Shown: positions 3,234 through 32,774, counted from the first letter of the stretch. The stretch: DNA of 49,753 bases from Macrostomum lignano (GCA_002269645.1 NIVC01000133.1:117421-167173); one strand, 5' to 3'. Translations and numbers: made by a program. Notes: generated from the sequence alone by a model not told the origin.

Positions 3234-3305
3234 CTGATGTCGGTACCGGAATGAAGTCTTCGTCTCTCAGCCGATTGTCAACCTGCTTCAGAGGCCGAGC
3301 GGCGT
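3234..3305 (-). CDS. Probable downstream gene C exon (AARPLKQVDNRLRDEDFIPVPTS); spacer/stalk
   Basis: gctattttcag| acceptor, |gtgaga donor, 72 nt, phase 1-1, open frame. Assignment to gene C rests on strand and phase. Confidence 0.62.
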
Positions 3306-4204
3306 CTGAAAATAGCAAATAGGGTACTTTTTGTACTTTTCATGTCCGTTGCCTACCCAATTTTCATCCCAATCGCACTCTGTACTCCCAAATAAATTAC
3401 ATTTATCTCTCTCCTAACCTGCCCTAACTGTTAACTGCCAGCCCCGCTACCATCCGCCACAGCTAAATCTGTCGGTCTTGGAAACTGTCGGCAGCGCGAC
3501 ACAGACAGGGAGAAGTGCTGGCCGAAGTGAAGGAGGCAATGATGAGGCTAAAGAGGGGTGGGGCAGCCCTGGGGCCATCGGATGACGCTAGCGGCTAGCA
3601 GCAGTTCAAATCACCGCTACTGGAGCTGGGGAAGGGAGGGATGAGAGAGAGATTGACCCCTTGGTATGGCCCTGCTCAACTGTAACAGTCAGTCTGGATG
3701 CCCAGGCTGTGTTTGGAGGCTATTGTGCGTGTGACGGTGGTCCCTCATCTCTGCTGCATATCCGCGTGTCTTTGCCAGTGGCTATAGTTAAAGCTATCAG
3801 TCCGCGTCTTCGTCTCATCTCTCTCTCCCGCCACTTCCTTCTCATTTTCTCGACCCTGGTCTGACCAAACCTTTACCGCATCGCATGGAACGTGCATCAC
3901 AGAGAGAGAGAGGCCCCTCTTTTTTAGTAAAAAAAACTGGATATTCTTCCATAAGCTTTAAGCCTTAAAGCTTTCTATGCTTCTTATTCTATCCGTGATA
4001 TATATGCTCACTATATCGTTCATTAGTGAACCGCGTGTCAGCCAGTGCTGAAAAAGGAGTTCTGGTCACGCCAATCTGCATCTCCGCTATTGTAGTTTGT
4101 TGTCCTTAGTGTATTTAGAGGTGGGAGTAGCTTTGTGTACAAGGTCATCTGCTTATTGTGTGGCTTAGGAATGGATCAGGAAAATGCATCTAGATTAGGG
4201 TAAT

Positions 4205-4578
4205 TTCTGGTAGCAGCAGATTGTAGAAGGTAGATGTGTCTGGTGGCAGATTGTAAGAGGTAGATGTGTCTGGTGGCAGATTGTAAGAGGTAGATGTGTC
4301 TGGTGGCAGATTGTAAGAGGTAGATGTGTCTGGTGGCAGATTGTAAGAGGTAGATGTGTCTGGTGGCAGATTGTAAGAGGTAGATGTGTCTGGTGGCAGA
4401 TTGTAAGAGGTAGATGTGTCTGGTGGCAGATTGTAAGAGGTAGATGTGTCTGGTGGCAGATTGTAGAAGGTAGATGTGTCTGGTGGCAGATTGTAAGAGG
4501 TAGATGTGTCTGGTGGCAGATTGTAAGAGGTAGATGTGTCTGGTGGCAGATTGTAAGAGGTAGATGTGTCTGATGGTA
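4205..4578. repeat. 30-bp minisatellite GGCAGATTGTAAGAGGTAGATGTGTCTGGT, about 12 copies
   Basis: Direct inspection; 10-aa period in the ORF track. Confidence 0.97.
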
Positions 4579-5607
4579 AGAGGTATTTTAATAGATGTCT
4601 GGTAAAAGCAGATTGTAGATTGTAGGTGTTGCTGGTCACTGAAGGCAGATTGCAATAAAAGGCACAGTATATTACTAAGACAGTTTAAACTACGTAATTA
4701 ACGTGTGCTACGGACAACCAGGTCAGTTAATAACTAATTATATTAATCATAATGATTAGAGGTGTCTTAGAAGTGCCTCGTCGCCTTTTAAAAAGCTTTT
4801 AACAATCAATTCAAGCCTGTCCCAATCCCCATGTAATTGAGACTCTGATGCCAAACCGGAAGCAAAGAAGTTTAGTGCTATTATTCCTCTAAGCCCTTCG
4901 CATTGCCTTATAATTGCTAATTAATGTAAAATCACCTTGAAAAGCCTCAGAAAAAAGCATTGGCCCTGTAGCAGGTCCTGGTTGGCTAGCAACAGAAGCC
5001 GGCGCGGCATGGAAAATGATGAATTAATGCGGCCTATTATAATCTAAAATGCCTTGCCTTTATTTCTTCCCTTTTGAAGACGCTGCTTCTGCTGCTGCTA
5101 GAAGAAAATTACTTTGCTGGATGGGGATGGCCGCGGCTATAGGACGAAAGACGGTCAGGCAGGGGATGGCGCTATTATACAAGAGAGAGAAACAGGCTCC
5201 CAATTCATTCTCCATCATTGATGCCGAAGGTTGGAAGCCAAAGAATAAACACGGCGGCGGTGGCCAAGAGACGGCCTGTGGGCGCCGGCGAGCCCCAGCG
5301 CTACGGCAGCTAGACTTACTCTGTGGCGCTATTAATCACGAAAGATAATTGGCTTAGCGACTTATTTTGTGCCGGCGCAGCGCCACCCCTGCCCAGCGAT
5401 CCCGCAGGCGGGCCTTTTGGATGGGGGGGTGAAGGGGGAAAATAATTACAACTATCCCGTGCCGCTATTTGTTGCATTATGAATGCCGGATTGCCTTTTT
5501 CTTGTTGGGGAGATGCCTAATCATCCATTGTTAATTATTGATAGTCATATCCCATTCGCAGCAGCCGAGAGCCAACCTTCCACCCCTGGGGATAAAATTC
5601 CCCCCAC

Positions 5608-5709
5608 TCCCTTGGGTTTGGCGGCAAAGGATTTGATCCAGCGACCCGAATCGGCAGGGAGGCGATGTATGGGGCTGGCAGGGCGGCTGCGTGACTGACG
5701 GTCGGCATG
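5608..5709 (-). CDS. Possible gene C exon (PCRPSVTQPPCQPHTSPPCRFGSLDQILCRQTQG)
   Basis: ctaccag| acceptor would complete the L-P-C junction. 102 nt, phase 1-1, but the donor (gtgggg) is weak and the peptide is not a recognisable domain. Confidence 0.28.
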
Positions 5710-5789
5710 CTGGTAGATGGCGGGTGGGTTGGGAGCGCAAGAGGAGACCATGAGTGAGGGGACAGCGGATGTGAAATCGGTGGATAAGG

Positions 5790-6412
5790 AGAGAGCGGAT
5801 AGGGAGAGAGCGGATAGGGAGAGAGCGGATAGGGAGAGAGCGGATAGGGAGAGAGCGGATAGGGAGAGAGCGGATAGGGAGAGAGCGGATAGGGAGAGAG
5901 CGGATAGGGAGAGAGCGGATAGGGAGAGAGCGGATAGGGAGAGAGCGGATAGGGAGAGAGCGGATAGGGAGAGAGCGGATAGGGAGAGAGCGGATAGGGA
6001 GAGAGCGGATAGGGAGAGAGCGGATAGGGAGAGAGCGGATAGGGAGAGAGCGGATAGGGAGAGAGCGGATAGGGAGAGAGCGGATAGGAGAGAGCGGATA
6101 GGGAGAGAGCGGATAGGGAGAGAGCGGATAGGGAGAGAGCGGATAGGGAGAGAGCGGATAGGGAGAGAGCGGATAGGGAGAGAGCGGATAGGGAGAGAGC
6201 GGATAGGGAGAGAGCGGATAGGGAGAGAGCGGATAGGGAGAGAGCGGATAGGAGAGAGCGGATAGGAGAGAGCGGATAGGGAGAGAGCGGATAGGGAGAG
6301 AGCGGATAGGGAGAGAGCGGATAGGGAGAGAGCGGATAGGGAGAGAGCGGATAGGGAGAGAGCGGATAGGGAGAGAGCGGATAGGGAGAGAGCGGATAGG
6401 GAGAGAGCGGAT
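5790..6412. repeat. 15-bp minisatellite GAGAGCGGATAGGGA, about 41 copies
   Basis: Direct inspection. Confidence 0.97.
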
Positions 6413-6892
6413 CGGGTTAGCCGGATTCGACGTGGAGAAGACGGTGCATATGAATAGGTGGTACACCTGACCTGTTCCCTTGGGCTTGATGCGGTATTAA
6501 ACTCAGACCAAAGAAAAATGAATTCAAACTGCATAGTTAAAAGCCAAAACGCTGCTTGGTCCACAGCGTCCTTACTCTCCTCCAGCCTCACCAAGAGTCG
6601 CACAGAAAAGCCGAAGCCGCCCGATAAAAAAATCCTCATTCACAAACAGCGATCCTCTCCACATTGGCTCAGCCTGACACTTTTATGGCTGCTTGCAGTG
6701 CCCCCTGCTGCGTATTTCTTTTCTGCTTCATGGGAGGAGCTTCCACTACTGCCCGCACCCGTAATAAACTGATCAGAGATGAATGCTCATTTATCCGTGC
6801 AACTAAATATTTGTACATGGCCTGGACTGTACATTGTTCAATAATAATGCTAGGTAGAGCATGTTTGTCTATTGCAAAGAAGCTAAAGTATG

Positions 6893-7425
6893 TCATGCTG
6901 TCTATGGCAAAGAAAAGTGAAGCAAGACATGCTGTCTATGGCAAAGAACGGAAAACCAGACATACTGTCTATGGCAAAGAACGGAAAACCAGACATGCTG
7001 TCTATGGCAAAGAACGGAAAACCAGACATACTGTCTATGGCAAAGAACGGAAAACCAGACATACTGTCTATGGCAAAGAACGGAAAACCAGACATACTGT
7101 CTATGGCAAAGAACGGAAAACCAGACATGCTGTCTATGGCAAAGAACGGAAAACCAGACATACTGTCTATGGCAAAAAGAGCGGAAAACCAGACATGCTG
7201 TCTATGGCAAAACGAGCGGAAAACCAGACATACTGTCTATGGCAAAAAGAGCGGAAAACCAGACATGCTGTCTATGGCAAAAAGAGCGGAAAACCAGACA
7301 TACTGTCTATGGCAAAAAGAGCGGAAAACCAGACATGCTGCCTATGGCAAAAAGAGCGGAAAACCAGACATGCTGTCTATGGCAAAAAGAGCGGAAAACC
7401 AGACATACTGTCTATGGCAAAGAAC
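6893..7425. repeat. 33-bp minisatellite CTGTCTATGGCAAAGAACGGAAAACCAGACAT(A/G), about 16 copies
   Basis: 11-aa period. The right-half units are AAAAAGAGCGG variants. Confidence 0.96.
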
Positions 7426-8126
7426 AGCAAAAGTCTGAAACATATCTTCTTTATTCAGAATATGGTTTGAACAGGCTAAGCACCCTATAATCCGTCCACT
7501 TTTCCCAAGCTTAACCCGCTGTTGCCCCGTCTCCCTCAACTATCTTCCCTTTTCTGTCAAGCACGCATCTGATCCATTTCGTGCTGCTGCTAAAGCCCTT
7601 CATCTGCTAGTCACCGAGCTGCTGATACTGCAGACTTATTGCGTAATCAAGTAGCTGAATATTTAACCTGTTTTTTACTATACACACTGAGCAGAATCCC
7701 CAAGAAAGCTTGCGAATCCCCTCGGCGCTTAGAGAGTTGGGATATAGTTTTTTTTACCTCGGCGTCTCATCTTTCCTCCACCGAGAACCCAACAACCCCT
7801 CACTCTTCCTCTTCCCGATCGTGATCTGGACTTGCGGACACCAAATTTCCAACTCTGTGAGCAGAAGTTTTTGGAAAATTTGTGAATGGCAGAATAGGAT
7901 ACTCACAATCTGTCACAATGCTCAGTCAAGATCTGCTCAGTCAGCTATAAGGTTTCTGGCACTGTATTTGCCTAGCTATGAGAATCCTAGTCGCCCAGGA
8001 AGAAAAAGCAACTTTCATAAATGCCGGGGAAGAGCTGGCACAGCAAAGACTGTAAAATTTTCTTTCAAAATATGACGAGTGAGAAAACTATACTGGACGA
8101 TCATAAATCACTGTGCACTTTCAAAT

Positions 8127-8731
8127 CGAGACACACATATCGGTATGCCATAGACTGCACAATGAGACACACATATCGGTATGCCATAGACTGCACAATG
8201 AGACACACATATCGGTATGCCATAGACTGCACAATGGGACACACATATCGGTATGCCATAGACTGCACAATGAGACACACATATCGGTATGCCATAGACT
8301 GCACAATGAGACACACATATCGGTATGCCATAGACTGCACAATGAGACACACATATCGGTATGCCATAGACTGCACAATGAGATATACATATCGGTATGC
8401 CGTAGACTGCAAAATGAGACACACATATCGGTATGCAGTAGACTGCACAATGAGACACACATATCGGTATGCCATAGACTGCACAATGAGACACACATAT
8501 CGGTATGCCATAGACTGCACAATGAGACACACATATCGGTATGCCATAGACTGCACAATGAGACACACATATCGGTATGCAGTTGCCTGCACAATGAGAC
8601 ACACATATCGGTATGCAGTAGACTGCACAATGAGACACACATATCGGTATGCCATAGACTGCACAATGAGACACACATATCGGTATGCCATAGACTGCAC
8701 AATGAGACACACATATCGGTATGCCGTAGAC
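8127..8731. repeat. 36-bp minisatellite GAGACACACATATCGGTATGCCATAGACTGCACAAT, about 17 copies
   Basis: 12-aa period, contiguous units with no spacers. Confidence 0.97.
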
Positions 8732-8765
8732 AACACTAAAAGCAGCAATATCAGGGTAAACTTAC

Positions 8766-8837
8766 GCAGGCATTTCCTGTTGACCCGGCGCAGGCACTGA
8801 CGAGCCTCAAAATAGCCGGGCGGGCAGTGGTTGCAGG
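8766..8837 (-). CDS. Gene C exon 6: second TNFR-type repeat (ACNHCPPGYFEARQCLRRVNRKCL)
   Basis: gtccgcag| acceptor, |gtaagt donor, 72 nt, phase 1-1. Same Cys spacing as exon 5. Confidence 0.88.
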
Positions 8838-9689
8838 CTGCGGACGAGAACAGGTGGGGATTCGATGTAGCTACGGCACCTGCTGACCAGTTGCTAACTG
8901 TTATGGTTAGCGACAGCAGCAGCAGCAGCAGCAACTCCTTTGACACTGGCATGGTGCTGGCAGCTGCTGTTGCTGATGAAGGAGCTGTTTGGTTGTGCTG
9001 TTACCGAGCGCCAGCGCTAGTGAATTAGAAAGCATGGGCCATGCCATGCGGCGGCTCGCGGCTAGCTGTACAGTTTTAGACGGCTACCCAGCGAGCTAAA
9101 CTCCCCTATCCTACACACTGGAGGGTTGCCTCTGGAGGGGGCCGGGGGTTGGACTGAGCTAGACACCAGATGGACTCAGTACAGAATGGAGCTGGGCTTC
9201 CATTCTGTCAGCTTTGGCTCAATCTATGGAGCTATTGTTCAGGCGAACTCCTGCTGCGGATTGCCGAGGCCAGCTGGAGGAGAGGAGAGAGCGGGGGCTG
9301 TCCGGGGTGGGGGATCAATGACGAATCAATTGAAACAGATCTGGGGTTGGCTGGGTGGGAGCCAGAGAATGTGTTGCTTCCCCTTTTCTCTCTCTCTTTC
9401 TCTCTCTGTTTCTTTCAATTTTCTTTTTTGCTTTCTGACACGCCTGGCTGACAACAATTGAAACTGTATCGTGTCCAGATAACTTTTTGGGAGTCTGGGC
9501 GAGGGGGATGAAGGAGACAAGACGGGAGATTGGGATTGTATAAAAATAGTCTGGAGGCGTCTCTGATTGGCTGAGTAGTCCGCCAATGGAATATGGTGGA
9601 ACTGGGCTGGTTTTCAGGCCCGGCCCAGGGTCCCAGGGCTTGAGTTATTTCTATTGACTGAATGACACACAGTTGCAAATGACAGACGC

Positions 9690-10150
9690 AGACAATCACT
9701 CTGCAGATAATCACTCTGCAGACAATCACTCCGCAGGCAATCACTCCGCAGACAATCACTCCGCAGACAATCACTCCGCAGATAATCACTCCGCAGACAA
9801 TCACTCCGCAGACAATCACTCCGCAGGCAATCACTCCATAGTAAATGGACAATCACTCCACAGATAATCACTCAAAAGTCAATCACACAAAAGACAATCA
9901 CTCCACAGACAATCACTCAAACGTCAATCACACAAAAGACAATCACTCCACAGACAATCACTCAAAAGTCAAATCACACAAAAGACAATCACTCCACAGA
10001 AAATCACTCAAAAGTCAAATCACACAAAAGACAATCACTCCACAGACAATCACTCAAAAGTCAAATTACACAAAAGACAATCACTCCACAGAAAATCACT
10101 CAAAAGTCAAATCACACAAAAGACAATCAATGCGCAGGCAAAATCACTCC
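9690..10150. repeat. 15-bp GACAATCACTCCGCA array grading into a roughly 45-bp three-monomer higher-order unit
   Basis: Direct inspection. Confidence 0.92.
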
Positions 10151-10967
10151 GCAGATATACGAGATCAAGAAGTGGTTAGCATATGCTTATTGAGAGAGTC
10201 AGATTTCGATATAATATTCAGTGACTTACGTCATATGCAAGCGTCAAAGAGCTTAACACTTGAGTAGGGATTATAGCCAGCTCAATGGGTGAAGTAAGCG
10301 CTAACCTGCTCATTTAGAGTCAATCCCGATACGATCTGACATATATGCCCTTAAGCATGAGATCTGATTTATTACAATATAGTTGTCAGCTCATATCTGA
10401 ACTATTATACCAATAGTAGCATTGGTTCAGCTACTCAAGCTACTCAGGAGGAACACGAGCTATGACTCATTCTCAAAGTTAAAATACGCAAACGCCAATA
10501 AAAAGAGATTGTTTAAAATATGTTCGATAGTACAATAAAATAATGCCATGCAACATAAACACATTTGGTACTATACTGCTTGTAGAACTAGCGATGTAAA
10601 TGCTGCACAAATGGCCAGGTGGAACACGCAGCTGCGGGTACGCGTGCCAACGGGAAATCTTTTCCCAAAGTGTGGATAAGAAAACGGCTATAAGGGGGAA
10701 GCGAAGCCGGGGGGGGGATATTTCAAGCATCGCTGCACTTAACTAGCTGAGTGGGGGCTGCTTGCTAGAATGAGTGGCCTTGGCTATAGGGACTCGAGCG
10801 CATAAAAGTTCATAGCGAACTATTTAAATAGATTATTTTAGCGCATTTTAACCAAGGTTCAATTTCTTAGAACTTATCAGACTGGTTGAGCACTGGTGAA
10901 TCTCATGAGTAAGCAGGTCTAGTAACTCGATATCCGCAATGTATATCCATCGGTAGTTCTTGTAAGC

Positions 10968-11211
10968 CAGAGGTTGGCAAACTGTTTTTTAGCTCAAGGG
11001 CCAGATGGAGAATTCAGCTCATGGCTGCGGGCCATAATAGGATAAGATTAGAGAGAGGAGATAAGAGTGAAAAAGAGGGGAGAGGCGAGAGAAGAGACAA
11101 GAGAGCTGAGAAGACACAAACCATGAGCAGGCCGGATTGCTATTGCGAAGTTTCAAAGGACCCGATGGCCGGACCCGAGAAGCTTCGCGGGCCGGAGTTC
11201 GCCGACCGCTG
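10968..11211. mobile_element. hAT (Charlie-like) MITE
   Basis: Imperfect TIRs CAGAGGTTGGCAAAC / GTTCGCCGACCGCTG, flanked by a perfect 8-bp TSD TTGTAAGC (10960-10967 and 11212-11219). Confidence 0.85.
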
Positions 11212-11271
11212 TTGTAAGCAGTTGCCTGGTAGCTATCTTTGATTGAAAATATGCGCTAGAGATTGAGCCAC

Positions 11272-12407: not shown

Positions 12408-13855
12408 CAGTGTTTGCCTTCGTACGTATTTTGAATGTGTTGCTTAATATGTAATGTCTCTCGTTGGCGCGAATTCGAATTCTATTTGATCGTAGTTAGA
12501 TAGAACTTTCTGATAGTTCTACTGTTAAAAATGTATCGATTTATTTTAGTAAACGCCCGCAATGTCACCACTGATCGCTGATCCTGAACATGGTAATTGG
12601 CGATTATGAACTTGAGAAAAAAATCTGTCTAAGAATGTGAAAGCGTGTGAAACATTAAACAGCCAGAGAGGGTTAAAGAATTTAGCTGGATTATTACAGT
12701 TTGCAGCCTTCCAGCGCCAGCAGCAGCTTCAGCAACAGATGCGGAACCAATTTTGCCTAAATACGAGACGACACGAAGGTAACGGAGATGAAGACAGCTG
12801 GAGAGGGAGAAAGCTGGTCGAGTCTCTGGGGAAATGAATTCTGCTCGCCCAATATGCGGATCGGGACTTGCTGAATGATGAATGCGATGCGATGCAGTGC
12901 AGTGGCAAAGGCGGCAAAGCTGCGCATTATGATGCGGCGTGGGTCAACAATACGCAGGTGAGTGACAGCCTCCATGGCGGATGCGGCCCGGCATTGGAGA
13001 GCGGAGAATGGGAAATACGGGAGGGAATGGCGGGAATCTATACACTGTTTTGCTAAACAACACCCAAGTAGACGGAGACGGCTCTGCTTGGTGAGTGGCA
13101 GTGCGGGGGACAGATTATTTAAGAGAATTTTTTCATGCTTTTCCAGCGCTGCCACAAAATATTAATAATTGTCTTTAATGCTTGGGTATACGAAAGCAAC
13201 ATAAAAAGTCTAAGGTAAAAATATAGGAAAGAAGCTGTCTATAAACGACAATAATTCATAGAAAATAATTCACTTACTGCTTGAATTTTTGTCTGAAAAA
13301 AACAAAAATTTGAAAGTTGCAACAAAGTCAAGACGAGAGCAATGCGAATAAAAGCTTTGCTTGTCTGCTGCACCTTTTGGGGCAACAGCTTGGCAGATTG
13401 AGCACCCTGCCCTGCTCTTGCCAGTGGCTGAAGCAGCCGAACTAGAAGCAGAGGTGCGTGACAAGGAAGGAGTGGTAATCAGACAAGGGCTCGCATCTTG
13501 GCTAGTTGGACTTTTAGTTCTATTCATCTTTCTTTTCATTTTTCCAGCATTCCTTCTCCTAAATCTGTCCCTTGTCTTTGATTGCCTTCACAAAGGTGTG
13601 TCAATGCTGCGGCTGCATGGTAATGATGAATTTGGTCAAGAATATTCAGGGCGGTTTCTTAATCAGAAACAAGTCAGCTGATTGATCAGATAAAAAGGGT
13701 TGATTCGCCGAGCGATTTCTTTGACGACTTTTCGTGTGCAGGAATTTCGTTCAACTGATAGAATTCTTCACTAAAGTCAGCTCAAGTGTAGGCGTACTTC
13801 TAACTTCTAAGAAAGACAGAGGAGACGGCAGGTACAACAGTGAAATTGTGCTCAC

Positions 13856-13930: not shown

Positions 13931-13967
13931 CTGCGAATGAGGGTGCGGGGATACTGTCAATTTCTAG

Positions 13968-14470
13968 TGGTTGAGTACATATTTCTGTCACAGGTTGAGC
14001 ACATATTTCTGTCACAGGTTGAGCACATATTTCTGTCACAGGTTGAGTACATATTTCTGTCACAGGTTGAGCACATATTTCTGTCACAGGTTGAGCACAT
14101 ATTTCTGTCACAGGTTGAGTACATATTTCTGTCACAGGTTGAGCACATATTTCTGTCACAGGTTGAGCACATATTTCTGTCACAGGTTGAGCACATATTT
14201 CTGTCACAGGTTGAGCACATATTTCTGTCACAGGTTGAGCACATATTTCTGTCACAGGTTGAGCACATATTTCTGTCACAGGTTGAGCACATATTTCCGT
14301 CACAGGTTGAGCACATATTTCCGTCACAGGTTGAGCACATATTTCTGTCACAGTTTAAGCACACACATTTTGAACTAAAGGTTGAGCACAGATCTCTCAC
14401 AAGTTGAGCATACATATCTGTCACAGGTTGAGCACACAGGAGCACCCATTTCTGTCACTGTGTGCTCAAC
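13968..14470. repeat. 24-bp minisatellite GGTTGAGCACATATTTCTGTCACA, 16 intact plus degenerate copies, filling gene C intron 4
   Basis: Period 24. Confidence 0.97.
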
Positions 14471-15855: not shown

Positions 15856-16889
15856 ATCATACACTCGCTTAACCAGAGTGTACAATGACCCTTGACTAAT
15901 CGTCAAACATGTACACCTCTCTGGGATTTGTGGATTGGCTCTTATGAGTGCTGAACCGCCACAACAAGCCCCAATCGATTTCTGTTCACAGGCCTCAAAT
16001 TGGGGGGTCGTGGCGCGTGGTGCTTCAAGCCTTTCTTCAGCCAAGAAGCATATTTCCTGCTTTTCCAAGAAAGTAGCAGATGGTAGGAATGTGGAGACGT
16101 TAATTTTTATGTCTATGACCTAAACCAAGGCCCTATAAAATCCCGCAGGTCTTTCATTTTGGCTTTGGTGTTTATGGTACAGTTTATGACTCACGGACTC
16201 TACTGCAGTCCAGAGGCCCGGTTACTTGACTTGTACATCAACTTTCATTCCTTCGTACATCGGTTGAGTGATTTGATGGCAGTGTGAGTCAGCCTTAAGA
16301 AACTTTTTGATGATTCGGTGACAGATGCTGCCAGGCTAGTTAAAAATTCATTATTCATATCTTGCACAGGCTCTTAACCGAATTGCCTATCCATTTTCGA
16401 CTGGTGCAAAAATTTTTATGTTTTATTTCGAAACACGACAAGTTTCTTATTGCATGCGTTTTGACAAATTCGATGCGAATATGTTCACTTGTTCTACACT
16501 GAAAGCGACCCATAGCTGCTCTGTGAATTTCCAAATCTTGAGAAATATTAGGTAGTTGCTAACAAGGCTTCTTCTAGGAGAGCCTTTCTGGGGGGGGCTG
16601 CTTTTAATTACCACAATTCTCCCAGCTGCTCGGCCTGAGAGCGGAGTGGGATTAACTAAAGATTTTCAGCTTAGAGATTTCCTAGAGGCAAAAAGGGGTT
16701 TTTGAAAATTGCCACGAACGTGAGCCATTTTTGCTTACACCAATCTCTTTGATCTTCTCAAAGGGTTTAGAAGAATGCTGTAATTAAAATTTTAGCCCTT
16801 CGGGAAGCAGGTTTAATGTTTTTTTGAGCCAGTCGAACAGTTAGGGAGAAGAAATAAAATATTACAGGTACGGAGGGAGAAGCAAGAGA

Positions 16890-18252
16890 TAAAAGAGAGA
16901 AGGCATGAGAGAGAAGGTATGAGAGATAGAAGGTAGAAGAGGAGAGAGGGAGAAGGCAGGAGAGAGGGAGAAGGCAGGAGAGAGAAGGCAGGAGAAGAGA
17001 GAGAAGGCAGGAGAGAGAAGGCATGAGAGAGAGAAGGCAGGAGAGGAGAGAGAAGGCAGGAGAGGAGAGAGAAGGCAGGAGAGAGAGAAGGCAGGAGAGG
17101 AGAGAGAAGGCAAGAGAGGAAAGAGAAGGCAAGAGAGGAGAGAGAAGGCAGGAGAGAGAGAAGGCAAGAGAGGAGAGAGAAGGCAAGAGAGGAGAGAGAA
17201 GGCATGAGAGGAGAGAGAAGGCAGGAGAGAGAAGGCATGAGAGGAGAGAGAAGGCAGGAGAGAGAAGGCATGAGAGGAGAGAGAAGGCAGGAGAGAGAAG
17301 GCAGGAGAGAGAAGGCAGGAGAGAGAAGGCAGGAGATAGAAGGCAGGAGAGAGAAGGCAGGAGAGAGAAGGCAGGAGAGGAGAGAGAAGGCAGGAGAGAG
17401 AGAAGGCATGAGAGGAGAGAGAAGGCAGGAGAGAGAAGGCATGAGAGGAGAGAGAAGGCAGGAGAGAGAAGGCATGAGAGGAGAGAGAAGGCAGGAGAGA
17501 GAAGGCATGAGAGGAGAGAGAAGGCAGGAGAGAGAAGGCATGAGAGGAGAGAGAAGGCAGGAAAGAGAAGGCATGAGAGGAGAGAGAAGGCAGGAGAGGA
17601 GAGAGAAGGCAGGAGAGAGAAAGCAAGAGAGGAGAGAGAAGGCAGGAGAGGAGAGAGAAGGCAGGAAAGAGAAGGCATGAGAGGAGAGAGAAGGCAGGAG
17701 AGAGAAAGCAAGAGAGAAGAGAGAAGGCAAGAGAGGAGAGAGAAGGCAGGAGAGAGGGAAGGCATGAGAGGAGAGAGAAGGCAGGAGAGAGAAGGCATGA
17801 GAGGAGAGAGAAGGCAGGAGAGAGAAGGCAAGAGAGGAGAGAGAAGGCAGGAGAGGAGAGAGAAGGCAGGAGAGAGAAGACAAGAGAGGAGAGAGAAGGC
17901 AGGAGAGGAGAGAGAAGGCAGGAGAGAGAAAGCAAGAGAGGAGAGAGAAGGCAGGAGAGGAGAGAGAAGGCAGGAAAGAGAAGGCATGAGAGGAGAGAGA
18001 AGGCAGGAGAGAGAAAGCAAGAGAGGAGAGAGAAGGCAGGAGAGGAGAGAGAAGGCAGGAAAGAGAAGGCATGAGAGGAGAGAGAAGGCAGGAGAGAGAA
18101 AGCAAGAGAGGAGAGAGAAGGCAGGAGAGAGAAGGCAGGAGAGAGAAGGCAGGAGAGGAGAGAGAAGGCAGGAGAGAGAAGGCATGAGAGGAGAGAGAGA
18201 AGGCAGGAGAGAGAAGGCAGGAGAGAGAGAAGGCAGGAGAGAAGAGAGGAGA
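16890..18252. repeat. Polypurine degenerate repeat (GAGAGAAGGCA(G/T)GA core)
   Basis: Direct inspection. Confidence 0.95.
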
Positions 18253-22182: not shown

Positions 22183-23254
22183 TCCTTTTTTCTCCCCTCT
22201 TCTTCGAAGATTCTTTTCGATCCGCACTTCTTAACATTTTTCTCACACTTAGTCTCCATTCTATTCTCATCTCAATGCCCTCTCTGCTTCCTATCCGTTC
22301 CACCGATCTAATCTCTCATCTTTGGTCTGACCCTCCTCTGCTGTCTCTTTCTCTCACTCTCCTTCGCCAACTCAATTTACACGTACGTACGTGTATCTGC
22401 CAGTCCCAGGGGACATAGCCAGTGGTTGCGGCTCAAACTGGCCTTATAAATGCTCTTATTGCAGTCATGGGCCACTTGTCTGTCAGTGTAAAAAAACAAA
22501 ACGATTACAGTAAATGTTGTGCTAGATCACAAGCGCTTGGACAGAAACTCGCGCGTTGCAGCAGTGTGGAACGGTCAGGCAAAGCCTGGGTTTTCCAAAT
22601 CGCGGGCTTGCAGCAAGTCAATTGCAATGGAGAAAGAGATGCACGAGATGGATGGGTGCAGTTACTGCAAATATTGACTTGCAGCCTTCCCAGAAAACTG
22701 GGGGGGGGGATTGCCCTGGTTTTTTACACAAAAAGCGCACGGGGAAGAGACTGGATTGCGTTGTTTGGGAGAACTGATCTCAGGAAGATTGACGACAAGA
22801 GTCGGAGGGCCGGCCACTCCGGACGACAGCCAATGCGTTTACTTATTGTTAACTAAATACGTGTTTGAGAGATGGAGAGAGGAGACTCTCTCTCTCAGCA
22901 TTTCTCCTGCAATTTTGGACTCAATATGGTGTCCCCCATTGTCCGTCAGGTTGCTGGGGTTCCTTAACGGAAAGAACTATGAAAATCAGCATTGACTATC
23001 TGTAAGCAAGCCTACCTGCTTAGCTAAAAGAAAATCTCCTTTGCTGGTCATTTCCTGGACTGCATGGCTTGGACCAATGCCAACAAAAGACTGGCTAAGG
23101 TTTCTGAGCTCTCAGTCCGCAATTTTGTTTGCTCAAACTTGGAGGCACGAGTATGGCGTTGGGTAACCCCTGACCTGCTTTGGGGTTAATGCGAATTGTC
23201 AGACACAGACAAAGCACTGTCTGGTTAATCCTTCACTATGCTGTCACTCCTTCT

Positions 23255-24122
23255 CATTCACTCTGTCACCCACCTGTCACTCCCTCCCATTCACCCAATT
23301 CACCCACCTGTCACTCCCTCCCATTCACTCTGTCACCCACCTGTCACTCCCTCCCATTCACTCTGTCACCCACCTGTCACTCCCTCCCATTCACCCAAGT
23401 CACCCATCTGTCACTCTCTGTCATTCACTCTGTCACCCACCTGTCACTCCCTCCCATTCACCCAATTCACCCACCTGTCACTCTCTGTCATTCACTCTGT
23501 CACCCACCTGTCACTCCCTCCCATTCACTCTGTCACCCACCTGTCACTCCCTCCCATTTACCCAAGTCACCCATCTGTCACTCTCTGTCATTCACTCTGT
23601 CACCCACCTGTCACTCCCTCCCATTTACCCAAGTCACCCACCTGTCACTCTCTGTCATTCACTCTGTCACCCACCTGTCACTCCCTCCCATTCACCCAAG
23701 TCACCCACCTGTCACTCTCTCCCATTCACTCAAGTCACCAACCTGTCACTCTCTCCCATTCACTCAAGTCACCCACCTGTCACTCTCTCCCATTCACTCA
23801 AGTCACCCACCTGTCACTCTCTCCCATTCACTCAAGTCACCCACCTGTCACTCTCTCCCATTCACTCAAGTCACCCACCTGTCACTCTCTCCCATTCACT
23901 CTGTCACATACCTGTCACCCTCTCCCATTCACTCAGTCACCCACCTGTCACTCTCTCCCATTCACTCAAGTCACCCACCTGTCACTCTCTCCCATTCACT
24001 CAGTCACCTTACCTGTCACTCTCTCCCATTCACTCAAGTCACCCAGCTGTCACTCTCTCCCATTCACTCAAGTCACCCACCTGTCACTCTCTCCCATTCA
24101 CTCAAGTCACCCACCTGTCACC
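23255..24122. repeat. About 34-bp minisatellite CACCCACCTGTCACTCTCTCCCATTCACTCAAGT, about 25 copies
   Basis: Starts about 35 nt after the exon 3 donor (minus-strand sense). Confidence 0.95.
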
Positions 24123-24157
24123 CTCTCCCTCCACCGCTCCCGTTCCCCCTCTCTCAC

Positions 24158-24978: not shown

Positions 24979-25741
24979 CTGTAAGAGGCGTGCATGTTTT
25001 CGCTGTTGTGTGGTTGTTATAAGCGTGAAGGTAATTCATCTGCAAATAATCGCGATGTACATCGACTGATGTACATTGCAAATATATAAATCGTTGCGCG
25101 TGGCTTTAGCCACTTTGTGTGTTTTGGTCTCGCTAAGCTCTCGCCTTCTCTCAGCTTACAGTGCTTCAACACCTGCCTTAGTGTCCCAATGCCTGTCTTT
25201 GTGTCTGCCTGAGTCTTTCAATGCCATTTGTCTTAGTTTCTGTGTTCTGAACTGCCATCGCCAAGGACAAAGGTTGTTTATAAGGCAGGGTACATACTCG
25301 TCACAACTGACATTGAAGCTAGCCTCTCAGTAGGTGAAATTAGCTAAGTGCCTAATTATATACAATTAAATGAGAGTCTATATTTGGCAGGTGCTTCACA
25401 CAGCCAATTAAAGTGGCTCAGAGAGACGGAGGACTTGAAAAAAAGAAAGTTCTTAAAAGACATTCTGCTGTCGATTTTCTCTCGAAGGTTAATTTCTCAT
25501 CTAAGGATACGCAGTGCTCTTGTAATTTAAACGCATGGTGGTGCCCCAGGGGCTGCAGTTCAAAGCCAAGGTGTGAATAAATGCGAACAGCTGCCTTTTT
25601 CCCGAGCAGATAAAAATAGCATTTTTTCATTTGGCTTATTGAGACTAATTTTACAGCAGAAAATGGCAATTTAATACTTCAGATCTCCTAACTCGGAAAC
25701 TGCGAACTGGGACACAATGCGTCTTTCTCGAGTCTCAGATC

Positions 25742-26838
25742 CCGTCCCCAGTCCTTAGTTCGTAGTCCCTAATCCCCAGTCCCTAATCCCCCAGTCCCCA
25801 GTCCCCAGTCCCCAGTCCCCAGTCCCCAGTCCCCAGTCCCCAGTCCCCAGTCCTCAGTCCCCAGTCCCCAGTCCCCAGTCCCAGTCCCCAGTCCCCAGTC
25901 CCCAGTCCCCAGTCCCCAGTCCCCAGTCCCTAATCCCCCAGTCCCCAGTCCCCAGTCCCCAGTCCCCAGTCCCCAGTCCCCAGTCCCCAGTCCCCAGTCC
26001 CTAATCCCCAGTCCCCAGTCCCCAGTCCCCAGTCCCCAGTCCCCAGTCCCCATTCCCCAGTCCCCAGTCCCCAGTCCCCAGTCCCCAGTCCCCAGTCCCC
26101 AGTCCCCAGTCCCCAGTCCCCAGTCCCCAGTCCCCAGTCCCTAATCCCCAGTCCCCAGTCCCCAGTCCCCAGTCCCCAGTCCCCAGTCCCCAGTCCCCAG
26201 TCTCCAGTCCCCAGTCCCCAGTCCCCAGTCCCCAGTCCCCAGTCCCCAGTCCCCAGTCCCCAGTCCCTAATCCCCCAGTCCCCAGTCCCCAGTCCCCAGT
26301 CCCCAGTCCCAGTCCCCAGTCCCTAATCCCCAGTCCCCAGTCCCCAGTCCCCAGTCCCCAGTCCCTAATCCCCCAGTCCCCAGTCCCCAGTCCCACAGTC
26401 CCCAGTCCCCAGTCCCCAGTCCCCAGTCCCCAGTCCCCAGTCCCCAGTCCCCAATCCCTAATCCCCAATCCCCAGTCCTCAGTCCCCAATCCCCAGTCCC
26501 CAATCCCCAGTCCCCAATCCCCAGTCCCCAGTCCCCAGTCCCCAATCCCCAGTCCCCAGTCCCCATTCCCCAGTCCCCAGTCCCCAGTCCCTAATCCCCA
26601 GTCCCCAGTCCCCAATCCCCAATCCCCAATCCCCAGTCCCCAGTCCTCAGTCCCCAGTCCCCAGTCCCCAGTCCCCAATCCCCAGTCCCCAGTCCCCAGT
26701 CTCCAGTCCCCAGTCCCTAATCCCCCAGTCCCCAGTCCCCAATCCCCAATCCCCAGTCCCCAATCCCCAATCCCCAGTCCCCAGTCCCCAATCTCCAATC
26801 CCCAGTCCAATCCCCAGTCCCCAGTCCCCAGTCCCCAG
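25742..26838. repeat. (CCCCAGT)n / (ACTGGGG)n heptamer array, about 155 copies
   Basis: Direct inspection, with CCCCAAT and CCCTAAT variants. Confidence 0.98.
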
Positions 26839-27596
26839 TGCCCAGCCGCAGTTGCAGACATTTAAGCCAGCCAATTTTCTGCTTCAGCTAAAAGCAGGCA
26901 GAAGCGGCTGAGAGGCGGCAGAGTTGAAATTGAGAAGATGGCTCAGCATCGAGAGGCTGAGCCGGTCAGAGAGCTTTGAATGATGCAGCGGCTTAGGCAG
27001 TAAGAAAACCCCACACGCCGACCTGAAGGTGCGGGGAATTGCGGAGCGTGTATTTGAGACAAGTGAGACCCCCCCCCAACCCAGCCTCCGCAATCCTCTC
27101 CATCGTGATCCTATACCCTTGGCTGAGACCTTGGCTTTGAAATTCTACTATATATAACAGTAAATATTGTTAACTTTATATACATTTACAGAGGGAGCGC
27201 TGAGAGGGCCTGGGGGAGTCTGGTGTGTGTGCATGTGTTTTCCCGACAGTGCTTTTAGCCGGCAGCGAGGCACCCACACCAACCCCCCCCCCATCCTAAA
27301 GCCAGCGGTGTCACTGGCGCACTTGAAAGTGCAATTCATTAATGCAAATTGGACGCTTCAATCCTGCAGCCGGCAAACTCTTCTCCGGCCACTGCTAATA
27401 TAGAGGGGGGAGTCTAATTTTGGTAGAAGGCTTCATCTCTGTAGAAGTCGCTCCCGAGGATTTTTCTCCCACAACGCCCCTTCTCTTTCCTCTACCGTCT
27501 CCTGTTCAGCGCTGCAAAGTCTTGACTCATTTGGCCGCCAGCTCCCGGAGAGTCCCGAAAAAAATCCCACCACGCCTATCCCCATCCCCACTTTAC

Positions 27597-27695
27597 CGAA
27601 CACTTTTAGCGCTGGCACCGGTCGTACGTGAAGCCGCGGCCACCGGCTGGCGTCCACCTGCGACATCGGGCTGGCCAGGAAAATCTCCACGGATT
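27597..27695 (-). CDS. Gene C exon 2 (E-SVEIFLASPMSQVDASRWPRLHVRPVPALKVF)
   Basis: tattgcag| acceptor, |gtaaag donor, 99 nt, phase 1-1, open and in frame with both neighbours. Confidence 0.7.
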
Positions 27696-28019
27696 CTGCA
27701 ATATTGGAACAAAATAGCGGGAAGAATATTTAATAAATGATGCAAAACTCCTGTGCGCGCGTGTGTTTAGACGCAATGATTGGCATTGGCTGTTTTACTG
27801 AAATTGTTCAAATTGGCTCTCGGTTACTCCGCTGCTCTTGAGAGTCCGTAATTAAGGGCTTTAGTGTAGCATGGTCCGACTAAAGTATTAAAAGCAGCTA
27901 TATTTAGGCTCCAGGTAAAAGTCTTTTAATAGTGCAAGGACTTTTATGGCCTCCGGTTTGATTTGAAATTTGAGGTTTCTCTGCTCGGAATAAAATCCAA
28001 AAGAGCAAGATTGTGACAG

Positions 28020-28365
28020 TCTACTAATCAGAGGTGTGACAGCTAATGATCAGATATGTGACAGATGTGACAGTCCACTAATCAGAGGTGTGACAGTCCA
28101 CTAATCAGAGGTGTAACAGCTAATGATCAGAGATGTGACAGGTGTGACAGTCCTCTAATCAGAGGTGTAACAGCTAATGATCAGAGATGTGACAGGTGTG
28201 ACAGTCCTCTAATCAGAGGTGTGACAGCTAATGCTCAGAGATGTGACAGGTGTGACAGACCACTAATCAGAGATGTGACAGCTAATGCTCAGATATGTAA
28301 CAGGTGTGACAGACCACTAATCAGAGGTGTGACAGCTAATGCTCAGAAATGCAACAGGTGTGTCA
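28020..28365. repeat. About 54-bp composite GTGTGACAG-based repeat, about 6 copies
   Basis: Period 54 (28211 to 28265). Confidence 0.88.
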
Positions 28366-28984
28366 GCTCTATAACCAGGGAAGTGATAGGTGAGTCAGCC
28401 AATAAACAGGTATTTGAAGATTCAAAATTACTGTTAAGGGCGTCCAGATCTCCTAAAATTTATAATAACTAAAAAGTCAATCAACAACAGGTGAAAGATT
28501 TCCATCAGATGCTTATTTCAAGAGCCGCGGCACGTGGCTCGCAGTCGAGAGTTTTCTTAGAAACCTGACAAGCCGGAACTCTCGATTTGAAAGCGCGCTA
28601 AAAATGGCGGTTGTTACAATGGACTGAATTGGCAGCCTCATCTGCAGCGCACTGAGTGGCGGCCAAGGGCCAGTGCATATCAATTATTTATCAAGGACCT
28701 CTGCTCCCTTATTCCCCTTTCTTTCTCTCCCACTCTCTACCTTGTTACATTCGTTCCAGCTCGTTAAATTTTCGTTTGACCGAAACGAGCCGCCATAAAG
28801 TTGCCCGACCGACTGTGCGTTTGTTTATCGAGTCTCTCTGTGCTGATGTCTGATCAGTGACCATGCGACAGTTGCGACCCTGTTGTCAACTGCTGATTCG
28901 CATTGAACTCCAGCACTTATTGATCTGGCTCTGGTCCTCTGGCGCTATGCACTGTTTTATATGCTCTCATCTCTCATCTGCTCT

Positions 28985-29141
28985 CTCTCCTCTCCCCCTT
29001 CCTTTCTCTCCCTTCCCTCACTCTCCCTTCACTCAGTCTCCCTTCCCTCTCTCCCTTCTCCTCTCTCCCTTCCTTTCTCTCCCTTCCCCCACTCTCCCTT
29101 CACTCAGTCTCCATTCCACCACTCTCCCTTCACTCTCTCCC

Positions 29142-29205
<64 letters not shown>

Positions 29206-29740
29206 TCCCCCATTCTCCCTTCCCCCACTCTCCCTTCCCTCTCTCCCTTCCTCCACTCTCCCTTCCCTCTCTCCCTTCCCTCTCTCCCTTCCCACTCTCC
29301 CTTCCCTCAGTCTCCCTTCCACCACTCTCCCTTCCCTCCCTCTACCTTCCTTTCTCTCCCTTCCCTCTCTCCCTTCTCCTCTCTCCCTTCTCCTTTCTCT
29401 CCCTTCCCTCTCTCCCTTCCCTCTCTCTCCCTTCCCTCCCTCTACCTTCCTTTCTCTCCCTTCCCTCTCTCCCTTCTCCTCTCTCCCTTCTCCTTTCTCT
29501 CCCTTCCCTCTCTCCCTTCCTCCACTCTCCCTTCCCTCTCTCCCTTCCCTCTCTCCCTTCCCACTCTCCCTTCCCTCAGTCTCCCTTCCACCACTCTCCC
29601 TTCCCTCCCTCTACCTTCCTTTCTCTCCCTTCCTTCTCTCCCTTCTCCTCTCTCCCTTCTCCTTTCTCTCCCTTCCCTCTCTCCCTTCCCTCCCTCTCCC
29701 TTCTTTCTCTCCCTTCCCTCTCTCCCTTCCTTCTCTCCCT
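28985..29740. repeat. Polypyrimidine (CTCTCCCTTCC)n with an embedded (CT)n tract
   Basis: Direct inspection. Confidence 0.95.
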
Positions 29741-30549
29741 CTTTTCTAATCTTCTTTTTCATATCTCCTCTATACTTCAGACCCTTCTCTTCCCTTCCTC
29801 TGCTGCTTCTCAGCTCCGACCGCAATGAAAGTCCCTATCCACACAATTTTTCTAAAAAGCCAAAAACTCCCATCTATTTACATATAGGATTTTATCCAAA
29901 AATTTCTATGCGGTCATCATACTCTTGCGGACCGGAAATTCCGTTGATCGACTGATGCCAGACGAGCCTCCCTACGCCCCCCCCCCCAGCTCAATGGTTC
30001 TCCACTCCCTCTTTCTCTGGCAGTGGGCAGTAGCAGCATGGCCACAGATGCAGATAAAGTGCATGCAAATTCCAGGCTGAAATACATTGTCAGTTGATTA
30101 GCTCTGATCGCATGCCAGAATGCCTGCACATTCAGATTTTGAGTGCAAATTTTCAAATTAACTACGTTAATATTGAATGTGAGCATCAAAACAAAATAAA
30201 GATAATTTGCCAATTTGTTTAATTATCCAAGTTAAAAGCTCCTCAATATGTATTTTTTGCGGCCATAAACTACAGCCAGCCAGAGCTGTTCACAGAGTGC
30301 AAGGCAATTTTAAGAATGAGCTCCGGGCAAACTCCGTCCCTGGATGAAGCTGCAGCTCTCTCAGCATCCTCTCTCTGCCATGCCCCCCGCAGTGCAGAGT
30401 TGGCATGCGAGTGGGTGAAGGTTGGTGAGCAGCCACTGCCACCCAATTTCATAACTTTAACAAGGATTGTCAGAGCTGGCATCAACTTTACTAATGACAT
30501 TTTTTGCGGCTGGACTCGGGGAGAGGCTCAGGGTCAGGGAAAGGCTCAA

Positions 30550-31005
30550 TGAGAGACTCAGACAGACTCAGAGAGATGCTCAGAGAGTGACTCAGGGAGA
30601 GACTTAGAGAGTGACTCAGGGAGAGGCTCAGGGAGAGACTCAGATAGGACTCAGGGAGAGACTCAGGGAGAGACTCAGGGAGAGACTCAGGGAGAGACTC
30701 AGATAGAGACTCAGAGAGTGACTCAGAGAGTGACTCAGAGAGTGGCTCTGAGAGGACTCATTGAGAGACTCGGAGAGTGACTCAGGGAGAGGACTCAGGG
30801 AGAGACTCAGGGAGAGACTCAGATAGGACTCAGGGAGAGACGCAGATAGGACTCAGGGAGAGACTCAGAGAGTGACTCGGGGGAGAGACTCAGGACTCAG
30901 AGAGGGACTCAGGACTCAGAGAGAGACTCAGAGAGTGACTCCGAGAGTGACTCAGGGAGAGACTCAGGACTCAGAGAGAGACTCAGATAGGACTCAGGGA
31001 GAGAT
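30550..31005. repeat. Degenerate 12-bp GACTCAGGGAGA array
   Basis: Direct inspection. Confidence 0.9.
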
Positions 31006-31544
31006 CAAGAAGGATATTCAGGGACTCGGAGCATTTCAGTAAGAGAAAAGGGGTCATAAATACATTGATAGGTTATTGGGAAGAGGCAGATAGGAAGGTA
31101 CCCGGCATAGACAGACAGTCAACACAAGTCTTTAGGCCCTACAGAATTTATGTAATTTACGATTAAATGGATTTGCAATTTTAGCGATAAATTTGATAAA
31201 GTGAAACAGGAACGAAGTCGAAGCTTTACCTCCGGAGGTAAACAGAGTCAGCAAGTTGAACATAATGCAGACTAGGCAACGGGTAAAAATTTAGCTGACA
31301 ATCCAACGACTAGCTATACTGTTTAGAATGTGTGCGTAAATGCAAATTAAATGGAGTAGAAAATGCCATTAGCTTATCCTGTGTTTTTGCTGCATGCGAA
31401 TGCGTGGGTTTGGGCTTGGGAGAAATCTACTTTCTAGCCTAAGCCGCATGCCCGCTAGTTTTACAGAAGTTGGCTTTTAATGCCTCTTTGCAATGTTTGT
31501 GTTTACAAAAATCTTCAACTGGCTTCACTTCGGTGCTTAAAAAT

Positions 31545-31895
31545 TCTGCAGTGTCTATGGCTCAGACTGGAGTGGGTTAGGGTTAGGGTTAGGGTTAGGG
31601 TTAGGGTTTGTGCTAGGCTAGTGCTGCAGTGTCTATGGCTCAGACTGGAGTGTGCTAGGCTAGCGTTGCAGTGTCTATGGCTTAGACTGGAGTGTGCTAG
31701 GCTAGCGTTGCAGTGTCTATGGCTTAGACTGGAGTGTGATAGGCTAGTGTTGCAGTGTCTATGGCTTAGACTGGAGTGTGATAGGCTAGTGTTGCAGTGT
31801 CTATGGCTTAGACTGGAGTGTGCTAGGCTAGCGTTGCAGTGTCTATGGCTTAGACTGGAGTGTGCTAGGCTAGTGCTGCAGTGTTTATGGCTTAG
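31545..31895. repeat. 42-bp minisatellite (about 8 copies) containing an interstitial (GGGTTA)5-GGGTT telomeric tract at 31574-31608
   Basis: 14-aa period; the telomeric hexamers interrupt the first unit. Confidence 0.95.
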
Positions 31896-31955
31896 AGCTA
31901 TAGCTACTAAGGAGCGCTAATCCATCAGGCTGGCCAGTGAGCAGTCAGAACTCAC

Positions 31956-32082
31956 CGAGTCCCGTCATCTGACCGGGCACAATCAGCGTGAGCTCCTCTC
32001 TGATGCCGAGCAGACGGCAGGCCGTCATTGATGCGCACAGAGTAACCAGCGAGCATAGTGTTAAAGTTGTCAACGTTGTCAT
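31956..32082 (-). CDS. Gene C (EGF/TNFR-repeat secreted or surface protein), coding exon 1: signal peptide MTTLTTLTLCSLVTLCASMTACRLLGIREELTLIVPGQMTGL
   Basis: Acceptor ctttttcag gives an exon start at 32139 (5'UTR part). ATG at 32082, hydrophobic N-terminus, donor G|gtgagt, 127 nt, phase 1. Confidence 0.8.
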
Positions 32083-32774
32083 GGCAACCCGATTGTTGAT
32101 ACACGAAGCGCCGCCAGTCGACCTTCTGATGCCTTCAACCTGAAAAAGAATCGGATGCCACATGAGGCTCATTGACTGACAACTGAAGTAGAAAGGGCAC
32201 AGCACTCAAAAATGTGTGATTGCATTGGATTGGCATCTGTTTTCGAGTGCGCAAATTTCTTGACCACTGTAAGTGCGCAATGTCATTTCTTGAGCTTTAA
32301 TTGTCGCCAAATTGATGTCGCGTTGCCTAGACTATTGGCCCATAGAGTGGTATTCACTGCACACTATTTTCATTTATCATACAGTATACACAATTGTTTG
32401 CACTACGTCTGTGCTCCAAACCCCATCTGTTTGCTCTAATTTACAAACAAGTTTAAAGTATTCAAAACTGCACTTCACTTCCACTTGCTAAAATAGGAAT
32501 AGTCCACGGTAGAAGTGCCCTCCCATTTCCCAACAGCTGCATCGATCTGTCGGATTGAGAGATTCGTTGGAGCGTGAAGAGTTGGACAGCCTAAAGTGCG
32601 CACCTCTGCCACCTATGGGCGGAGATGAGGCCGAGTTACCGGAGAGATCCCGGCTGAATCAATAGAAGTCTGGGATTTCCCCTAGATACGCTTGAATTCG
32701 ATTCTGCTCTGTACTGCGCTACCAGTTTGCCTTATACCACCAGACCTAGCTGACAAACTGAACTTTAATCTGCG

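Follow-up and report, generated by a model that had tools for sequence, protein, structure and literature searches.

Can a few short exons, scattered among minisatellite arrays in the genome of the flatworm Macrostomum lignano, make up a single gene in which epidermal growth factor (EGF)-like domains are joined to modules of the tumour necrosis factor receptor (TNFR) type? The question is raised by a stretch of 49,753 nucleotides (nt; GCA_002269645.1 NIVC01000133.1:117421-167173), which is referred to below as the window and numbered from its first letter. An initial annotation of this DNA, made from the sequence alone, proposed that seven exons between positions 3234 and 32139 encode a modular EGF and TNFR-repeat protein. 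Our analysis indicates that the domain-bearing exons are secure and that the minus strand probably, though by no means certainly, holds a real M. lignano protein-coding gene, a single one, encoding an EGF-TNFR mosaic protein.

Domain content of the spliced product

Exons were read base by base on the minus strand and compared with Pfam, both singly and after splicing; in addition, PROSITE-type patterns (EGF_CA, Asx hydroxylation, EGF_2 and TNFR_NGFR_1) were tested by regular expressions. The calcium-binding EGF (cbEGF) exon (DIDEC...CTNLVGFYSCAC...C) alone matches EGF_CA with 43.1 bits (cut-off 27; E = 5e-11) and EGF_3 with 42.9 bits, while the exon for TNFR module 1 alone matches TNFR_c6 with 32.5 bits over 25 amino acids (aa; E = 1e-7, profile positions 17-39). 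These single-exon E-values lie far past what chance would yield in a six-frame translation of 50 kb. The exon for TNFR module 2 scores 20.7 bits alone, and the two TNFR exons jointly reach 41.9 bits against a TNFR_c6 cut-off of 29.4. When the whole spliced product was searched, the scores were 34.0 bits for EGF_CA (cut-off 27), 37.4 for EGF_3 (28.5) and 48.5 for TNFR_c6, so that both families named in the initial annotation exceed their curated cut-offs.

The calcium-binding signature of the cbEGF domain is complete (D-I-D-E-C ... C-T-N-L-V-G-F-Y-S-C-A-C), as is characteristic of calcium-binding EGF domains, and the EGF_CA and Asx-hydroxylation patterns match residues 101-127 and 118-129, respectively. 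The codon for its first Asp (G/AT, the slash marking the splice point here and below) is created by the splice to the preceding exon, and both the EGF_CA and TNFR_NGFR_1 patterns are present only after splicing. The preceding EGF-like exon carries six cysteines (C-x5-C-x10-C-x6-C-x-C-x12-C) and matches the EGF_2 pattern, which is found twice in the spliced product. Taken alone this exon had no Pfam match, and within the whole spliced product cEGF gave E = 0.0025. It aligns to EGF modules of NELL2 across the EGF/cbEGF junction, where the C-V-D-I-D-E-C linker is the same as in the tandem cbEGF pairs of that protein. In the Protein Data Bank (PDB), the EGF part has sequence matches to NELL2, CD97, uromodulin and Notch, and the TNFR part to OPG (E = 3.7e-5), RANK, CD40 and DR6.

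The initial annotation described two TNFR repeats. The assignment to the TNFR_c6 type stands, but each of the two exons encodes a four-cysteine half module of the B2 type, corresponding to positions 17-39 of a Pfam profile that has 39 positions, and not a full cysteine-rich domain (CRD). The sole complete TNFR_c6 match (profile 1-39, residues 129-165, 40.8 bits) borrows the last two cysteines of the cbEGF domain, whose C129...C140 segment (C-REGYYGNGIR-C) supplies the A1 half, and the TNFR_NGFR_1 pattern likewise matches across the cbEGF/TNFR junction only. The predicted architecture is thereby an EGF-like domain, a cbEGF domain with a shared hairpin and two B2 modules, rather than two full CRDs. 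The mature spliced product contains 20 cysteines, an even number (six each in the EGF-like and cbEGF domains and four in each TNFR module).

Exon structure and splice sites

Six of the claimed exons were located on the minus strand (Table 1), each with an AG acceptor and a GT[AG]AG donor and in phase 1 throughout. The lengths of the five internal ones (EGF-like, cbEGF, TNFR1, TNFR2 and spacer) are multiples of 3 nt and all are of phase 1-1, in agreement with the class 1-1, module-per-exon organization described by Patthy. Concatenated, the exons form a single open frame of 214 aa, in which the three junction peptides quoted in the initial annotation (GACV/DIDEC, IRCT/KCRQSC and AVCQ/ACNHC) are reproduced exactly.

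To evaluate the splice signals against background, candidates were required to have an open, symmetric phase-1 frame bounded by a GT[AG]AG donor and by a YAG acceptor with its pyrimidine tract. Over 32 kb this strict exon signature picked out seven candidates from the minus strand and none from the plus; the pseudo-exon background, compared between phases, strands and regions, was 0-4 per 32 kb per phase. Given that this background is non-negligible, the spacer exon, which has strong splice sites but is of low complexity and lacks a domain, is regarded as plausible. The linker exon proposed as the seventh was not found: there is no strict candidate within 31955-24332, and relaxed splice criteria gave weak ones only. 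Of the latter, 27695-27597, 31560-31465 and 31271-31143 were considered, and none was convincing enough to be accepted. The signal-peptide exon joins the EGF-like exon in frame without any linker.

Two further strict phase 1-1 candidates on the minus strand are 13278-13427 in intron 5 (150 nt, three cysteines, no domain) and 4012-4047 in intron 6 (36 nt), which may be cassette exons or chance occurrences. On the plus strand, an excess of phase-1 candidates at 41.0-41.3 kb consists of several acceptors with one common donor and has no domain.

Table 1. Features of the window assigned to, or considered for, the EGF-TNFR gene (slash, splice point)
Feature	Coordinates	Strand	Remarks
5' non-coding exon	40526-40371	-	Donor AAG/gtgagc at 40371; 5' end approximate; A0A1I8JBP3 residues 1-53
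Signal-peptide exon (exon 2)	32139-31956	-	Acceptor ttttcag/G; ATG 32082; ends ...CTC G/gtgagt, phase 1
EGF-like exon	24331-24158	-	ccccag/ ... GTT G/gtgaga; phase 1-1
cbEGF exon	14621-14499	-	gcacag/ ... ACA A/gtaagc; phase 1-1
TNFR module 1 exon	13930-13856	-	ttcgcag/ ... CAA G/gtgagc; phase 1-1; KCRQSCPPGQYMASQCTRTRDAVCQ
Possible 5' extension of TNFR module 2 exon	8966-8838	-	Strict acceptor 8966; ATG 8952 14 nt later; MPVSKELLLLLLLSLTITVSNWSAGAVA
TNFR module 2 exon	8837-8766	-	tccgcag/ ... CTG C/gtaagt; phase 1-1; ACNHCPPGYFEARQCLRRVNRKCL
Spacer exon (plausible)	3305-3234	-	Acceptor tttgctattttcag/ (ttttcag/); donor TCA G/gtgaga; phase 1-1; peptide HAARPLKQVDNRLRDEDFIPVPTS
Candidate terminal exon (speculative)	1731-1652	-	ASRFIGRTRTKATAAHRKSYLLDFSP, then stop; TAA stop inside AATAAA 1653-1648
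Satellites abutting exons	13969-14436, 8128-8731, 23241-24129, 31547-31896		Begin ~30-65 nt from exon edges; splice sites intact

The 5' end and an annotated fragment

Part of the gene is covered by an existing protein model, UniRef A0A1I8JBP3 (P0006, Macrostomum lignano, 117 aa). Its residues 1-53 match positions 40526-40368 of the minus strand with 100% identity, residues 50-117 match 32148-31948 of the same strand with 91% identity, and the model splices the upstream exon, from the donor at 40371, exactly to acceptor 32139. The acceptor is thus validated independently, and the gene now measures 37.3 kb or more, from 40526 to 3234 or beyond. The upstream exon is read as 5' untranslated region (UTR), since its frame is shut by a TAG just upstream and contains no Met. 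Exon 2 carries the remainder of the 5' UTR, the start codon and then a leader resembling a signal peptide (MTTLTTLTLCSLVTLCASMTAC...), followed by a short pro-region. The existing annotation thus covers just the first two exons of the gene.

The divergence of A0A1I8JBP3 from the window is uneven, with complete identity in the 5' exon and 91% identity in exon 2, where there is a one-codon indel (GQSLTGL versus GQMTGL); such a pattern suggests another allele, a homeologous copy or a fault in the assembly. The match to this entry places the window in M. lignano itself, or in an allele or homeologue almost identical to it, in agreement with the repeat-rich genome described for the species (PMC5730564). 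An exact look-up of contigs encoding A0A1I8JBP3 had none on record. A TATTTAAA motif lies at about 40572-40579, ~45-50 nt upstream of the 5' end of the model.

Do the exons belong to one transcript?

A two-row profile of both TNFR exons was searched against 1.84 billion representative proteins. The search returned 12 proteins, 11 of which are TNFR_c6 proteins and none of which has an EGF domain. Many are long tandem arrays of a 24-residue TNFR unit with the same C-x2-C-x2-C junction as in this gene; the only named relative is from the choanoflagellate Monosiga brevicollis, the others being metagenomic eukaryote contigs. The spliced TNFR1-TNFR2 sequence aligns colinearly over the exon junction to residues 92-142 of one of these proteins (P0023) and, with 44% identity, to residues 293-350 of another (P0024). 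All three joins between modules therefore restore the natural inter-module spacing, which would not be expected of chance juxtaposition, and the proposal of an exon-shuffled, phase-1 modular gene is borne out by the class 1-1 exons as well as by the spacings rebuilt at their junctions.

Several observations weigh against a single gene of this structure. No available transcript spans a junction past 31956, and in the sole transcript-derived model, A0A1I8JBP3, the leader is left unconnected to the EGF and TNFR exons; the model ignores donor 31956 and reads on (GLGEF, then stop) to a TGA present in the window. The leader itself (MTTLTTLTLC...) is only moderately hydrophobic, with a maximum 12-residue Kyte-Doolittle hydropathy of 1.94, and is without a basic n-region, so that it is outdone by the MPVSKELLLLLLLSLTITVSNWSAGAVA leader lying upstream of the TNFR module 2 exon (2.76). 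Furthermore, the spacer and terminal exons are without a domain, and the linker exon was not located. As regards A0A1I8JBP3, there is no minus-strand AATAAA for ~10 kb beyond the signal-peptide exon and a 42-bp satellite starts 60 nt past donor 31956; for these reasons we infer that the model is an unspliced or truncated assembly fragment and not a real short mRNA.

The second leader leads to an alternative in which the locus yields two products. TNFR module 2 would start its own mRNA, from an alternative promoter or by spliced-leader (SL) trans-splicing at acceptor 8966, to give a short protein consisting of a signal peptide and a TNFR module, and the EGF transcript would be a separate isoform or gene. 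Besides the more hydrophobic leader, this alternative is favoured by the strict acceptor and by a frame that, after a stop codon, stays open past ATG 8952 and on into the TNFR module 2 exon. In M. lignano, trans-splicing affects 39% of genes, and polycistronic precursors account for ~7% of transcripts (PMC5730564). However, the phase-1 donor of TNFR module 1 needs a downstream phase-1 acceptor, and the one at 8837 restores the natural tandem spacing; a signal peptide with a lone four-cysteine module would also be an odd product. Moreover, the poly-Leu of the leader derives from a (CTG)n run, another frame of which reads poly-Cys, and the signal peptide may thus be an accident of this microsatellite. 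We consider two products unlikely, and the extension at 8966-8838 may have arisen by chance or may serve as a first exon, either alternative or trans-spliced.

Two phase-compatible acceptor-to-stop candidates of 15 codons or more were found to the left of 3234; the candidate terminal exon alone ends within the window, the other (323-1) being satellite sequence that continues past its edge. No domain or transmembrane (TM) segment was found in the candidate terminal exon, and no TM-like or further Cys-rich exon within 8765-1. The initial annotation had noted neither a TM segment nor a death domain in the window; we likewise saw none there, nor any TRAF motif. Speculatively, were exon 1731-1652 used, the product would be soluble, ~240 aa long and complete within the window.

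Occurrence of the EGF and TNFR combination

Apart from the 117-aa M. lignano fragment, homology searches with the whole model retrieved nothing but EGF-repeat proteins, and a word-indexed search with the TNFR side produced no candidates. The protein collection searched includes the M. lignano UniRef proteome (the canonical TNFR of the species was found at 98%), and no protein in it covers the EGF and TNFR exons, which indicates that these exons are unannotated there. Our literature search found neither a precedent for an EGF and TNFR architecture nor any statement of its absence. The initial annotation called the gene lineage-specific; in keeping with this, no orthologue and no other EGF and TNFR protein was found by searches that did not exhaustively cover its occurrence across Metazoa. 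On sequence grounds the combination is apparently lineage-restricted.

Possible function of the product

If the single-gene reading is correct, the mRNA would be assembled from very small class 1-1 exons, and its product would be a secreted or type-I surface mosaic comprising a signal peptide, a short acidic linker, the EGF-like and cbEGF domains, two B2 modules and a low-complexity spacer. The C-terminus would be either a short basic tail encoded by exon 1731-1652 or located to the left of the window. The cbEGF domain may bind Ca2+ at the EGF/cbEGF interface and thereby stiffen the pair, while its final hairpin (the shared segment described above) may at the same time serve a TNFR-like CRD as its A1 sub-module. 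With all 20 cysteines paired, the EGF and TNFR modules would form a continuous disulfide-bonded rod, serving as an extracellular binding or spacer element in which the TNFR-type modules extend the rod and offer a binding surface.

A more specific role, as a true receptor or soluble decoy for a TNF ligand, would have the hybrid CRD and the extra B2 module bind an M. lignano TNF ligand, with the EGF pair as a second, calcium-dependent contact. The modules are unambiguously of the TNFR_c6 type and match the ligand-binding ectodomains of OPG, RANK and CD40, and the candidate terminal exon would yield a soluble, decoy-like product. In the classical TNFR superfamily (TNFRSF), ligand binding involves two full CRDs, as opposed to the one composite CRD and half CRD predicted here, but some members of the family (BCMA, BAFF-R, Fn14, Grindelwald) bind their ligand with a single or partial CRD. 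Against this role, the modules find their nearest relatives in tandem arrays from one choanoflagellate and from metagenomic eukaryotes, and choanoflagellates are not known to possess TNF ligands. The modules in such arrays look like generic Cys-rich blocks, so that binding of the TNF-ligand type is an assumption. The similarity to the canonical flatworm TNFR (38% over 40 aa) is at the level of pattern only, and the lack of a TM segment, death domain and TRAF motif in the window points in the same direction. TNF ligands do exist in M. lignano, several sequences having been reconstructed and six additional ones obtained from RNA-seq (Bertevello et al., PMC7519573). Weighing these points, we find such a receptor or decoy doubtful; TNF binding is possible, but not indicated. 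Quite unlikely, in our estimate, is a still more particular version, in which a flatworm-specific hybrid hairpin (the C-terminal sub-domain of cbEGF serving as TNFR A1) would make the ~240-aa soluble protein a Ca2+-tuned decoy or co-receptor for lineage-expanded TNF ligands; if true, exon shuffling would have found a new route to a TNF-binding ectodomain.

Minisatellites and the inflated introns

The window has a GC content of ~45% and is eukaryotic, and minisatellite arrays make up 37% of its 49.7 kb. Between 3234 and 32139 tandem arrays reach 44%, whereas coding sequence amounts to 643 nt, or 2% of the span, so the introns were rightly described as satellite-filled. In 5' to 3' order the introns measure 8.2, 7.6, 9.5, 0.57, 5.0 and 5.5 kb and hold 22 separate minisatellite arrays. 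They are ~5-7 times as long as the average of the species, in which the mean intron is 1.1-1.4 kb and over half of the genome consists of repeats, with simple and tandem repeats contributing 15% (PMC5730564). Even the 568-nt intron separating the cbEGF and TNFR1 exons is occupied to 82% by one 24-bp satellite. It appears that gene prediction missed the gene as a consequence of these minisatellite-inflated introns.

A silent or decaying relic, in which only the 5' exons of a satellite-swamped locus are transcribed to give the truncated annotated model, would agree with the long introns, the 44% satellite content, A0A1I8JBP3 as the only model stopping after exon 2 and the lack of any protein matching the EGF and TNFR exons in the collection, but it is highly unlikely, since the six exons retain all 20 cysteines, the full calcium-binding consensus, an uninterrupted reading frame and each of their splice sites, which in a repeat-prone genome speaks against neutral decay.

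Elsewhere in the window, an 18-bp satellite family (AAGCATCCCCCAGATAGC) flanks the gene on both sides, at 1242-1536 and 44194-44873; the two arrays share one orientation and are separated by 43 kb. GA-rich arrays with a similar unit recur at 16872-18248 and 49024-49746. On both strands of the window together, AATAAA occurs 60 times versus 33 +/- 5.6 expected from shuffles; part of this excess is due to copies within a 21-bp satellite at 20.4-22.2 kb and to the AT-rich region at 42-49 kb. The long open reading frames of the window were translated satellites only, with no transposon coding capacity, and a scan of the window for Rfam families and tRNAs found none of either.

Significance

The locus offers a clean spiralian case of shuffling with one module per phase 1-1 exon, and it joins two very common extracellular Cys-rich modules in an order absent from all relatives retrieved here. 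It would provide M. lignano, a regeneration model for which a survey listed only one TNFR (PMC7519573), with a second, non-canonical TNFR-domain gene, and it illustrates how minisatellite-inflated introns can hide genes from annotation. Should the product turn out to bind a TNF ligand, it would represent a new minimal ligand-binding architecture; if it does not, it would be one more mosaic matrix or surface protein, and ordinary. What we describe is apparently a new combination of two module types that are themselves very common, in a genome whose annotation is poor, and it would surprise few specialists.

Comparison with known systems

With regard to overall logic, proteins of the CRELD/SCUBE type are similar in having a signal peptide, EGF and cbEGF domains and then small Cys-rich repeats. 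Membership of the CRELD, SCUBE or ELAPOR types was nevertheless rejected, as there was no match to Furin-like, GCC2_GCC3, Ephrin_rec_like, DUF3456 (WE) or CUB, either in the whole product (E <= 1) or in the Cys-module region (E <= 10).

The CRDs of the TNFRSF (PF00020; OPG/TNFRSF11B, PDB 3urf, RANK, CD40 and p75NTR) have in common with this gene the C-x2,3-C-PxG-x-[YF]-x4-C-x7-C module and a DAVC-type ending. They are, however, arranged as three or four complete A1-B2 CRDs, whereas here there are two B2 halves, each on its own phase 1-1 exon, with EGF domains N-terminal to them and with no TM segment or death domain in the window. A platyhelminth survey credited M. lignano with only one TNFR and several TNF ligands, the canonical receptor, BOX15_Mlig018038g1, being a protein of 513 aa with four A1/B2 CRDs, a TM segment and a death domain (PMC7519573). 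Identity with that receptor was rejected, BLASTP giving only the short alignment cited above and the receptor having a separate entry (A0A1I8HNW7). The resemblance to the canonical platyhelminth TNFR, of the SmTNFR/NGFR-like orthogroup, is that of a shared pattern and falls short of orthology.

The EGF-cbEGF pair with its one-residue C-x-D-I-D-E-C linker is common to NELL1/2 (PDB 6pog, 6pol), CD97/EMR2, uromodulin, Notch and fibrillin. As in the cbEGF domains of those proteins, the calcium-binding and Asx-hydroxylation consensus is complete and a GNG motif precedes the last Cys. No companion domains of the kind found in those proteins (TSPN, VWC, GAIN, ZP etc.) were detected here, and unlike them the gene has one EGF pair only, fused directly (C-T-K-C) to TNFR-type modules.

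The closest counterparts of the TNFR part are M. brevicollis A9UU81 (P0021; 3677 aa, 17 TNFR_c6 matches) and the metagenomic proteins P0022-P0029, which share the 24-residue unit and the C-x2-C-x2-C junction, with identities of single modules of up to 60-70% (CRKQCPAGQYMASPCNATHDAVC versus CRQSCPPGQYMASQCTRTRDAVC). A9UU81, the best relative of the TNFR module, also has Cohesin and PDZ matches, an odd architecture. In these array proteins the unit is present in 5-19 copies without EGF, whereas in the M. lignano gene two copies stand behind an EGF pair.

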